From contig CALSCP010000986.1 of assembly GCA_943704425.1 (NCBI GenBank), positions 9,435-62,126 of the forward strand: a stretch of DNA of 52,692 nt, written 5' to 3'. A program made the position numbers and the translations under genes. A model generated the notes under the pieces. It searched no databases, was not told the DNA's origin, and saw only the letters and a list, made by a program, of their open reading frames with translations. Within the stretch, counting starts at the first letter, position 1, and each line of letters starts with the position of its first letter. The stretch is from Ministeria vibrans ATCC 50519. Taxonomy: Eukaryota > Protista > Filasterea. Positions 47,136-50,100 of the stretch are shown here, one piece after another.

Positions 47136-50100
47136 ATGACATTCTGTCGCCATCCACTGCTGAGCGATGTGTTTGGGTATGTGCGGGGGCAGGGGGTGGG
47201 GCTGTTCTGTGAGGATGAGGGTGGGCCAGACCAGGTGGACGGTGCACTGGCGAGAATGGAGGGACACAAGGACACAGTGACTGGTCTTGCTATCACTCCC
47301 GATGAGCAATTTCTGGTCAGTGTGTGTTGGGACCGGACCCTCATGGTGTGGTCGTTGAAGAATCACGCACATGTGCGAACTGTTGAGACTGGCCACACAG
47401 AGTACGATTGTTTGTTTCTGTGGTTTCTTCTCGTTTGATTGTGTTGTTTTCACAGTGGAATCAATTGTGTGTCAGTGTCTCCCGATGGACTGAAAATGGT
47501 CACTGGCTCACATGACTTCACTTTAAAAGTGTTTGTGTTTGCGAGTGGAGAGTGTGGTATGACTCTCACTGGACACACAAAGTAAGACATTTGTGACAAA
47601 TGAGTAGCTTGGACTGATTTTTGTTTGTGTTTGTAGTGCTGCTTTGTCGTGCGAATATTCGTCTGATGGACTGTTCATTGTGAGTGGATCGTATGATGAC
47701 ACAGTGAAAGTGTGGAATGCGCAAACAGGAGTGTGCACAATCACTCTCTCTGGTCACTCATCGTAAGTGTGTTTGTGATATTCTTTTGTTTCAACTGGTG
47801 TATTCTGATGTCATTCTTTTTGTTAGTTGGATCTTATCAGTGGTTTGGTCTCCCGACAATTCACAAGTGCTCAGTGGCTCATTTGACAACACACTCAAAT
47901 TGTGGGACCGTGAGAGTGGAAACTGTCTCATGACACTCACGGGACACTCACTGTAAGACAAACCCACTCATTTGCACTCTCATTCAATTTTCTGTTCTTG
48001 GTTTTCAGTCCAGTGAATTCAGTTGATTTCTCACCGAATGGACTGACTGTGATCAGTGGCTCAACTGACAAAACCATCAAACATTGGGACATTAAGAGTG
48101 GAAGGTGTGTCGTCACTTTCACTGGTCACTCAAAGTAAGAATTTAAACCCGATTTGAATCACTTTTTGAATGTCTCGTTTAGGCTTGTTTCGTGTGTGAA
48201 ATATTCACCCAATGGAACGAAAGTGCTCAGTGGCTCCAGTGACAATACTGTGAAACTGTGGTCTGTTTTTCGTGGAGATTGCGAGCGCACTTTTGTGGGA
48301 CACGAACTGTAAGAAAAGAATATGAGAATGAAAAGACACAATATCCAAGCAAGCAAGGGGGTATGTGTCGACTTACTTTTGGAAATGTGTAGTGTCATTA
48401 GCTCATTGGCATTCACTCGTAATGGACTAACTCTCTACACTGGCTCCCATGACAAGACCATTCTTGTGTGGTCTTGTGCAAACGGAACTCACATTGAAAC
48501 ACACTCCGTCGAACAGTAAGTGCTCAACTCAAATCCATTCTCGTTTGACTTATTTTCGCTTTTGTTCTCAGTGCTCCCAAATTGATTGAGTTCTCTTTGG
48601 ACGGACACACACTTCACATTCACTGTGAGTCAAACACAGTTGATTGGTCTGTCTCTGACACGCTCGAACTGCACAATCCGTAAGAGACACACACAGTCAC
48701 TCCCAAACACAGTCACATCACACTCGATGTGTTATACTTGCAGGAACACATTCCACCGATCAGCCTTCAAGTCGGCACTGGGTCGCGGGTCTGTCGAGTC
48801 ACTGTCGATGAAAGTGTTGTTTATGGGTGCAGTGATGGCGGGCAAGACGGCACTGCTTGCGGCACTGCAGGGACACTCATTGCCCGAGGAGAAAGACCGG
48901 TCGATTGCCACACGATTTCAGCGCATGCGAATGGTGTTCAACAAGGTTGGGGGATTTTTTGAGGCAGTGCCGGTGGGGGAGTACCGCTTGAAGAGCGTGA
49001 TCGGGGAGAAAAAGGCGGTGGCGGTGGTGCTGGAGGACGAGAGCTCTGGCGCGAGTGTGTCTGTTCCAAGTTCCTCAAGCAAGCCTGCCGCATTGATTGC
49101 ACCACCGACAAGTGCGCCAACAGCATCCATTTTGACCACGAATACCACCTCGGCCCCGCCTTCTTTCCCTACGACTGCCGCCTCTGCCCTCACTATGAGT
49201 GCGGTTCAAGACCTGCTCAAGGGCGAGCTGAACGAGCAGCACATTGATCTCGACACTTTCGACTTTGCCGGTGAGAAACAATTGACAGTTTCACTGTGCC
49301 TCAATTAAACACTCCCTTTTTTAATACTTCAGGTGAAGCAATGTTTGACTCGCTGCCTGCGCTGTTTATGGGCTCCGAGTCCGCCTACATTCTCGTCTTT
49401 GACCTGTCCGTCATGAACGACGCCACACAAGCACAGCGGCAGTACGAGCACCTGTCCAAGTGGGCTCACCTGATTGCGCACCAAGTGCCGGAGACCCTCT
49501 CGTCGTACTTCCGCGTACTCATTGTGGGCACCCATCTCGACACCTTTCCTGACGATACCGCGCCTTCTTCGCTGCTGCGTACTGTGTCGAAAGAGATTCG
49601 TCGCGTTGTGGGACCGGGGTTGGGCAAGCACTTGATTCTGCCTGGGTCTGGTCGCACTCCGTTCTTCCAAGTGGGCAGTGCAAAAGGCATCGGCTTGCGC
49701 GAATTGAGCCAAGGTATGCATGCTGCAGTACGTGCTCGCTCGTTGCCGCTGGAGTATGTGTGTGCGCAGGATCTGGTTGGTCGGTGGTCGCGGATGGGCC
49801 GCATTGACCTGATGTCGTCTGTTGCTGATCTGCCGAACGTTATCCTCAACGACGCCCCTCCAATTACATTTGGTTCGTTGTTTCCTGATCCTCGCGTACT
49901 ACGCACCGGACCCGTGCCGTACCTGGAGGAAGCGGCGGAAGTGCTGGTGTGCCGTGCGGACTCGAGTGCGCGAGGCGTTTGTGCTTCGGACACAATTGTG
50001 TTTGATGCACCACGCCTGATTGCGGCACTTGAGTTGCTGTGTTCCGTTGTTTTGGCACAGTGGGAGCGGGCGACGAGTGAGCGTGCACAGGAGATGCTCG

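Follow-up and report, generated by a model that had tools for sequence, protein, structure and literature searches.

An exon-per-blade WD40 propeller joined to a predicted Roc-COR switch in DNA of Ministeria vibrans

Introduction

When the repeats of a protein domain each occupy an exon of their own, equal in length and phase, are those exons cassettes still in play, or does the pattern record how the domain was once built? The question is posed by a gene at about 47136-51095 (+ strand, ~1116 codons) in a 52,692-nucleotide stretch of DNA from Ministeria vibrans ATCC 50519 (GenBank assembly GCA_943704425.1, contig CALSCP010000986.1, positions 9,435 to 62,126 of the forward strand), which we call the window and whose positions we use throughout. 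The gene encodes, in this order, an N-terminal WD40 propeller, a split Roc GTPase domain, and a COR domain. An initial annotation had seen in it a modular, diversifiable WD40 sensor coupled to a Roc-COR switch, with exons that could be skipped, duplicated, or swapped in frame. The reading we favor, and hold to be probable though well short of secure, is that this WD40-Roc-COR gene has an exon layout that is a frozen relic of old events, a propeller face that diversifies by amino acid replacement, and a role of the sensor type. A symmetric exon-per-repeat layout tells us how a repeat domain was built, not that shuffling continues. Loci of relatives are designated L001, L002, and so on.

Each blade of the propeller has its own exon

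Exon 0 (47136..47401; like every part of the gene, on the + strand) begins with the ATG at 47136 and encodes an N-terminal stretch and the first WD40 blade (Pfam WD40 E=2.4e-9); it ends in GH-T plus two bases, so that the next intron is phase 2. Then come five exons of exactly 126 nt, each encoding one WD40 blade: exon 1 (47456..47581, strands a to d; Pfam WD40 E=4.2e-7), exon 2 (47637..47762; E=7.3e-8), exon 3 (47827..47952; E=2.5e-9), exon 4 (48009..48134; E=1.7e-10), and exon 5 (48183..48308; E=1.2e-9). Exon 6 (48393..48515, 123 nt) holds a degenerate WD40 blade without the GH at its end, and its E value of 6.3e-6 lies exactly at the Pfam cut-off; exon 7 (48572..48679, 108 nt) is short and blade-like, has no Pfam match, and keeps both its position and its sequence in paralogues. 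The exons were searched singly, and every one from exon 0 to exon 6 matches Pfam WD40 (PF00400) with a score that reaches or exceeds the 27-bit cut-off and E values from 1.7e-10 to 6e-6. Just such an array had been described in the initial annotation, with five 126-nt exons followed by exons of 123 and 108 nt, one blade per symmetric exon, and phase-2 introns of 48-84 nt, the first six of which fall at the same place after GH-x; a script check returned these coordinates, lengths, and splice sites exactly, reading and script agreed on the introns, and Pfam WD40 recognizes each of the first six exons that had been listed.

From exon 0 to exon 7 the introns measure 54, 55, 64, 56, 48, 84, and 56 nt, and all are GT..AG and phase 2 by the same script check; the first of them (47402..47455, 54 nt) is 98% identical in L006, and the 64-nt intron between exon 7 and the first Roc exon (48680-48743) is phase 2 as well. 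The first six introns lie two bases past the codon that follows the Gly-His of the WD repeat. In most donors GTAAG follows two bases of the exon, so that a TAA falls in frame, and because of these stops the reading frame is open only after splicing. Since the introns sit in the loop that connects strand d to strand a, each 126-nt exon holds strands a-b-c-d of one blade.

A seed-and-extend search finds a 92-nt direct repeat in five copies, 61-75% identical and spaced 174-190 nt apart, each copy ending exactly at a donor. Tandem Repeats Finder reports no array in 46500-49500, and neither it nor the seed-and-extend search detects mutual similarity among the introns; the blades of the gene are 26-51% identical to one another in pairwise comparison. 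The exon-per-blade pattern is far beyond chance, because the 92-nt repeat recurs at donors and the same layout is present in independent homologous loci. Exon lengths and motifs together point to a propeller of eight blades in which exon 7, which would supply strands a to c only, is completed by the N-terminal strand of exon 0. The N-terminal stretch of exon 0 is kept in paralogues (it aligns with L004 and L005) and is probably the ring-closing strand or strands. No WD40 propeller with a symmetric exon for each blade was described in the literature that we searched, the coverage of which was incomplete.

A divergent Roc-COR module follows the propeller

The propeller leads into Roc exon a (48744..49270), which encodes the P-loop GAVMAGKT, a low-complexity, S/T/P/A-rich insert of ~100 residues, and DFAG (G3); it is flanked by a phase-2 intron before and a phase-1 intron after, and a homologous exon is found in seven loci. 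The Roc domain is then split by an intron of 62 nt (49271..49332, phase 1) just after DFAG, and resumes in a large exon (49333..50925) with VGTHLD (G4) and SAK (G5), followed by a COR-fold domain of ~400 residues. Read together, the motifs GAVMAGKT, DFAG, THLD (G4), and SAK are those of a Roc-type GTPase domain. Sequence profiles say less: Roc exon a matches NCBIfam small_GTP at E=2e-3, the family profile finds weak LRRK2 Roc matches only (E 0.11-1.2) among sequences from the Protein Data Bank (PDB), and exon a alone finds nothing meaningful. An exhaustive profile search of 1.84 billion representative proteins returned only the family itself and four weak matches (E ~1e-4) over the Roc tail, the closest outside the family, in proteins that carry Pfam Roc and/or COR-A.

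The COR domain was approached through structure. An AlphaFold2 model of the large exon, built on a nine-sequence alignment of that exon and its relatives, has a mean pLDDT of 79 and a pTM of 0.65, and the top 26 Foldseek matches of this model in the PDB are all Roco proteins (Roc-COR or COR structures). They include LRRK1 (E=2e-7), the Chlorobium tepidum LRR-Roc-COR and Roc-COR structures (2e-6 to 6e-5), and LRRK2; the isolated COR domain 3dpt is matched with a TM-score of 0.59 (normalised to the target). We accept membership in the Roc-COR class at the level of motifs and predicted fold, in agreement with the Roco identity given in the initial annotation, and on these grounds the window gene is most readily described as a divergent, lineage-specific Roco protein. 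The Roc-COR exon has a dN/dS of 0.19-0.30 at a dS of ~0.5, and is thus under purifying selection.

Confidence in the gene model is lowest at its 3′ end. A probable intron of 66 nt (50926..50991, phase 1) is placed there on the basis of indels relative to L001 that are not multiples of three, and its donor is positioned like the donor before the caspase-like exon of L002 (see below); the probable short last exon (50992..51095) comprises 34 codons plus TAG (51093-51095) and contains the stretch ALLIDG. With these 34 codons counted, the coding length computed from the coordinates is 3348 nt, or 1116 codons.

The S/T/P/A-rich insert (~48990-49190, ~100 residues) lies between the P-loop/switch I region and DFAG. 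It is the least conserved segment relative to L002, with 53-66% identity and indels, flanked by sequence of 91-98% identity.

Most relatives carry a caspase-like domain of which the window gene appears to keep a stub

In six of the eight relatives, the COR exon is followed by an exon for a caspase-like domain, spliced after it in L002:2778-3614, L004:4574-5440, L005:4242-5060, and L008:2221-3036, and cut by contig ends in L003:4939-5019 and L007:3248-3322. In L002 this exon is joined in frame to COR via a phase-1 intron. The domain is ~275 residues long, and its motifs HLLGHG and CDFCNSG, which may hold the His and Cys of a clan CD dyad, are invariant in the paralogues. It matches NCBIfam NF047832 (caspase, EACC1-associated type) with E=1e-8 over nearly the whole model, scoring 35 bits against a cut-off of 140 bits, and Pfam CHAT with E=5e-4; Foldseek with a low-confidence model (pLDDT 55) returns caspase-2/3/6/7 and MALT1. 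Since six of the eight relatives have the caspase-like domain after COR, we take WD40, Roc, COR, and caspase-like as the ancestral order of the family. Nor did the literature that we searched, again with incomplete coverage, contain a Roco protein that bears a caspase-like domain.

The caspase-like domain was not found anywhere in the window by tblastn (E<1). The window gene and L001 use the same donor as the caspase-bearing relatives, but then continue into a short, poorly conserved tail. In the window gene the ALLIDG of 50992-51095 resembles the first strand of the paralogues' caspase-like domain, and the short last exon therefore looks like a remnant of that domain. Without the effector, the window copy may serve as regulator or decoy, or it may be decaying; simple pseudogenisation is argued against by purifying selection on Roc-COR and by intact reading frames.

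The segment just downstream of the gene (51096-51700) is 86-87% identical to L001 and holds overlapping open frames on the minus (51128-51661) and plus (51167-51559) strands, with no Pfam match. We considered whether it might be a diverged caspase domain and rejected the idea, as it shows no similarity to one and no clear codon periodicity relative to L001.

The exon layout is old and shared by relatives

A word search with the large exon finds eight proteins, all from two ENA metagenome assemblies and 49-84% identical. A scan of JGI metagenome contigs found no relative, and a word search that started from exon 0 turned up only one close relative (P0016/L006, 89% amino acid identity), on a contig of 982 nt, too short for a comparison of the whole array.

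The layout of one blade per exon with phase-2 introns is common to every relative whose array can be read, namely L002, L003, L004, L005, and L007. Two of these arrays are complete: L005 has six blade exons of 126 nt and then one of 99 nt, and L003 has blade exons of 126, 126, 123, 129, 126, and 132 nt and then one of 99 nt. The others are partial, with 129, 126, 126, 126, and 129 nt before a scaffold gap in L004, 126, 126, 123, and 120 nt and then a short exon in L007, and 123 and 108 nt in L002, where the array is cut at the contig start. The window gene, L003, and L005 thus have an equal exon count, with six blade exons between exon 0 and a short exon. Measured in the Roc-COR exon, synonymous divergence of the window gene from these relatives exceeds 1; the layout is therefore old.

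A maximum likelihood tree of 28 blade exons groups them largely by position in the array: nine label changes by position suffice, against a mean of 18.7 when labels are shuffled, and none of 200 shuffles is as low. Exon 1 of the window gene forms a clade with its counterparts in L004 and L005 (support 96/95), and the exon-6 clade extends across five genes (support 94/98). For window exons 2 to 5, positional placement is not rejected by approximately unbiased (AU) tests (p 0.07-0.33). An alternative in which window exons 1-5 form one clade, as within-gene concerted evolution would produce, was not adopted; the best such tree is 20 log-likelihood units worse, a difference that is not formally significant (p=0.089).

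Substitutions concentrate on the propeller's predicted top face

If exon order has stood still, what has changed? We set exons 0-1 of the window gene against L006 (93% nucleotide identity) and exons 5-7 against L002, in each case the closest counterpart, and pooled the counts from separately framed exons. Over whole WD exons, dN/dS is ~0.6 at a dS of 0.09-0.16. The top-face hotspots R1-2, R1, and D-1 were defined a priori after Wu et al. 2012 (PMC3419727), and mapped by sequence pattern to 10 codons. Eight of these 10 had changed, compared with 21 of 184 other codons (Fisher p=3.6e-6). Within the hotspots pN is 0.41 and pS 0.115, a ratio of 3.6 (p=9e-4), and the remaining WD codons have a pN/pS of 0.48. 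Across the positional groups of the paralogues, R1-2, R1, and D-1 are the very three columns, among the 41 of a blade, that vary most, as would be expected of a binding surface that diversifies under selection. The hotspots of the top face thus appear to be under positive or diversifying selection, which is the outcome that a test proposed in the initial annotation had looked for.

Might such a face belong instead to an ordinary scaffold with a fixed partner, its layout a neutral relic and its fast surface change a sign of relaxed constraint in a decaying copy without effector? R1-2, R1, and D-1 are surface-exposed and generally variable among WD40 proteins (PMC3419727), the whole-exon dN/dS of ~0.6 is in keeping with relaxation, and the window gene and L001 do lack the caspase-like exon of six relatives and retain a stub only; yet pure relaxation predicts a ratio of ~1, not above 1, and the hotspots stand 3.6-fold above the synonymous rate in a propeller whose other codons are constrained, in a gene with all reading frames and splice sites intact and a Roc-COR exon held at a dN/dS of 0.19-0.30. 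We consider this account unlikely, although of the alternatives it survives best.

Frozen relic or working cassettes

Another alternative is that the 126-nt exons are working cassettes, blades being skipped, duplicated, or exchanged by alternative splicing or by unequal or ectopic recombination in introns, so as to yield a repertoire of propellers, as proposed for the leucine-rich repeat (LRR) exons of brown-algal ROCO genes. The precedent, which the initial annotation had cited for Ectocarpus, is real: ROCO genes there have 72-bp phase-2 LRR exons (PMC3341825, PMC11378527). The anatomy of the window gene would permit the same, since phase 2 is common to all eight introns between exon 0 and the Roc exon, and every internal exon is a multiple of 3 nt, so that any skip or swap keeps the frame; and the gene belongs to a multi-copy family, with eight relatives in two metagenome assemblies. 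Recent duplication, loss, or reordering of blade exons is not indicated, however. The complete arrays do not differ in exon number and the introns keep their positions, blades cluster with their positional counterparts and not with others of their own gene, and blades of low identity separated by dissimilar introns speak against recent duplication. Comparison of paralogues for exon number and order, a test that could have revealed shuffling, found neither variation (window gene, L003, and L005) nor recent exon duplicates. A closed propeller, moreover, tolerates changes in repeat number far less than open LRR or tetratricopeptide repeat (TPR) solenoids do, which constrains the number of blades.

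Three further observations could be taken to favor exchange. First, identity between the window and L002 (window 48230-50770, L002:1-2550) is mosaic: it is 95-99% over 48455-48978 and 49255-49554, which takes in exons 6-7 and the beginnings of Roc exon a and of the COR exon, declines gradually to ~70% by 50700, and is lost after 50750. Such a pattern points to recombination or gene conversion among paralogues, or else to chimerism of the assembly. Second, the N-terminal halves of window exons 4 and 5 resemble other blade positions, that of exon 4 resembling the exon-2 type of the paralogues. Third, in L001 another N-terminus is attached to the same Roc-COR, approximately at an exon boundary. 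The breakpoints of the mosaic hints, however, lie inside exons and not at introns: the half-exon resemblance, if real, hints at old inter-blade conversion with breakpoints inside exons rather than at cassette exchange, and it may also be convergence on the WD consensus. With fixed exon count, positional clustering, blade identities of 26-51%, and dissimilar introns, shuffling of cassettes is not supported, and we find it distinctly doubtful. Of the modular, diversifiable sensor that the initial annotation had proposed, the diversifying propeller is supported, with its substitutions at R1-2, R1, and D-1, and the route through exon cassettes is not supported by the data examined. Its coupling of a sensor to a Roc-COR switch is plausible, and gains strength from the hotspot pattern and from the caspase-like effector of most paralogues.

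Regarding L001 itself, its Roc-COR exon is 84% identical to that of the window, its downstream sequence is syntenic, and it has no WD40 exons. Instead, a cullin N-terminal-like frame (L001:298-1185; Pfam Cullin E=6e-6) continues directly into the Roc P-loop, at a junction that corresponds approximately to the window exon boundary at 48744. Either the domain swap is genuine, or the metagenome assembly is chimeric here.

A bolder version would make the whole family germline Roco-type innate immune or non-self receptors in a protist, composed of WD40 sensor, Roc-COR switch, and caspase-like executioner, with the blade exons as cassettes that splicing or exchange between paralogues would turn into propellers of differing specificity, and with the effector-less copies as decoys or regulators; we give this combination little credence, less again than the cassettes by themselves. 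Finally, that the periodic introns were inserted independently after Gly-His-x into a formerly intronless repeat array is very improbable: the introns lack mutual similarity and the conserved exon-end motif could have served as a proto-splice site, but seven introns at the same codon position and phase in all family members would need many parallel events where duplication of one exon-intron unit explains the pattern by a single mechanism, and loss of intron similarity is expected at an age at which the blades are 26-51% identical.

A proposed history and role for the gene

We return to the reading of a frozen layout with a diversifying face. An ancient tandem duplication of an exon-plus-intron unit, equivalent to one structural blade, would have built the propeller, which agrees with the phase-2 arrays of repeat exons known for LRRs in brown algae and Tetrahymena; in contrast to those open solenoids, the closed propeller has retained a fixed set of blades. 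The layout would since have been frozen, with exon number, order, and intron positions common to members more than 1 synonymous substitution per site apart. Diversification would now proceed by amino acid replacement at the top-face positions R1-2, R1, and D-1 and not by exon cassettes, perhaps together with recombination or conversion between paralogues over longer tracts, of which there are signs. By analogy with the logic of NOD-like receptors (NLRs) and the apoptosome, the propeller would bind a variable ligand, and the Roc-COR GTPase switch would receive the signal of binding, through which it might activate the C-terminal caspase-like protease that most members of the family possess. The window copy, having lost its effector, would act as a sensor-switch only, whether as regulator, adaptor, or decoy. 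Whereas exon anatomy, domain identities, the conserved layout, and the substitution pattern come from the analysis itself, ligand sensing, effector signaling, and a role in immunity or conflict are suggested by this analogy.

Several points weigh against this reading: i) Pfam Roc stays below its cut-off in both halves of the Roc domain (E=1e-3 for exon a, 0.013 for the second half), Pfam COR-A and COR-B have no match in a Pfam scan of the exons, and the COR assignment comes from a structure predicted from a nine-sequence alignment; ii) splice sites were placed from GT..AG borders, reading frame, and homology, and the number of blades and the way the ring closes were read from the lengths and motifs of the exons; iii) window exons 2 to 5 are unplaced on the blade tree, two of the AU tests are borderline (p ~0.07), and the half-exon comparison likens the N-terminal halves of exons 4 and 5 to other blade positions; iv) the hotspot test covers 10 codons mapped by pattern, and its comparison partners are short metagenome contigs, possibly paralogues or chimeric assemblies; and v) the whole-exon dN/dS of ~0.6 and the loss of the caspase-like domain could also mean relaxed constraint on the window copy.

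Why should this family matter? Phase-2 repeat-per-exon arrays are already known for LRR and TPR sensors. What the family would add is a convergent sensor-switch-effector architecture in which a Roco GTPase replaces the STAND ATPase and a caspase-like protease sits on the same chain; and, with its contact face showing signs of positive selection, it is a concrete candidate for the study of how immune-like receptors arise outside animals, plants, and fungi.

Comparison with known systems

Variable WD40 sensors of NTPase-switch proteins, with variability at the top face, are familiar from fungal HNWD/NWD NLRs and from highly repetitive prokaryotic WD40 proteins. In these systems the repeats are nearly identical in DNA and lie in one exon, they undergo repeat reshuffling and concerted evolution, and the switch is a STAND NACHT ATPase. 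The window gene differs on each count, with blades that are 26-51% identical and split by introns, and with Roc-COR, not NACHT, as the predicted switch.

The brown-algal LRR-ROCO candidate immune receptors of Ectocarpus and Saccharina (PMC3341825, PMC11378527) also have N-terminal repeats before Roc-COR, one repeat per exon of equal length (here five exons of 126 nt), introns all of phase 2, and diversifying selection on the predicted ligand-binding face, for which our own sample is small. They differ in that their unit is a 72-nt LRR of an open solenoid, where the present unit is a 126-nt WD40 blade in a closed propeller; in the present family no variation in exon number or order and no recent exon duplicates are seen, and most members carry a caspase-like effector. 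The LRR genes of Tetrahymena, with exact-length repeat exons of 90 bp and an extreme bias toward phase-2 introns, have been interpreted as clonal expansion of an exon-intron unit (PMC6564038). There the exons number tens of thousands and expansion is ongoing, whereas here the family is small, its eight exons are fixed, and its divergence is old.

LRRK1, LRRK2, and the Chlorobium tepidum Roco protein (8fac, 6hlu, 3dpu, 3dpt) give the best structural matches after Roc, and share DFAG and GTHLD with the window gene. Sequence identity to them is ~10-14%; the WD40 domain of the window gene is N-terminal, not C-terminal, the gene has no kinase, LRR, or ankyrin domain, and its Roc domain bears the insert of ~100 residues. 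The APAF-1-type apoptosome and the bacterial EACC1-associated caspase systems (PMC7159879) follow a tripartite logic, in which a WD40 sensor is paired with a nucleotide switch and a protease of the caspase family, and which the present family would share, but here the three modules form one polypeptide with a Roco GTPase instead of an AP-ATPase, and the window gene is without the protease. The likeness to EACC1 systems extends to the C-terminal domain of the paralogues, which matches the NCBIfam EACC1 model, but below its curated cut-off.

Neighborhood of the gene

Introns in the DNA of the window are very short, and Rfam has no match in it. CT/GA-rich, microsatellite-like tracts at 42500-42700, 45000-45200, and 52230-52400 read as Ser-Leu or Glu-Arg runs in six-frame open reading frames and are apparently intergenic or intronic. 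Upstream of the WD40-Roc-COR gene, the window encodes a mitochondrial-type prolyl-tRNA synthetase (7103-8494, + strand), whose best matches, at 31-48% identity, are in Andalucia (a jakobid), Mucoromycota, and dictyostelids, so that the protein collection holds no close relative of the source organism; an MLL-like protein with PHD fingers, FYRN, and FYRC (16187-21205, + strand); and a vault-PARP-like protein (31477-36345, - strand) with PARP regulatory and catalytic domains, VIT, VWA, and a C-terminal ubiquitin domain.

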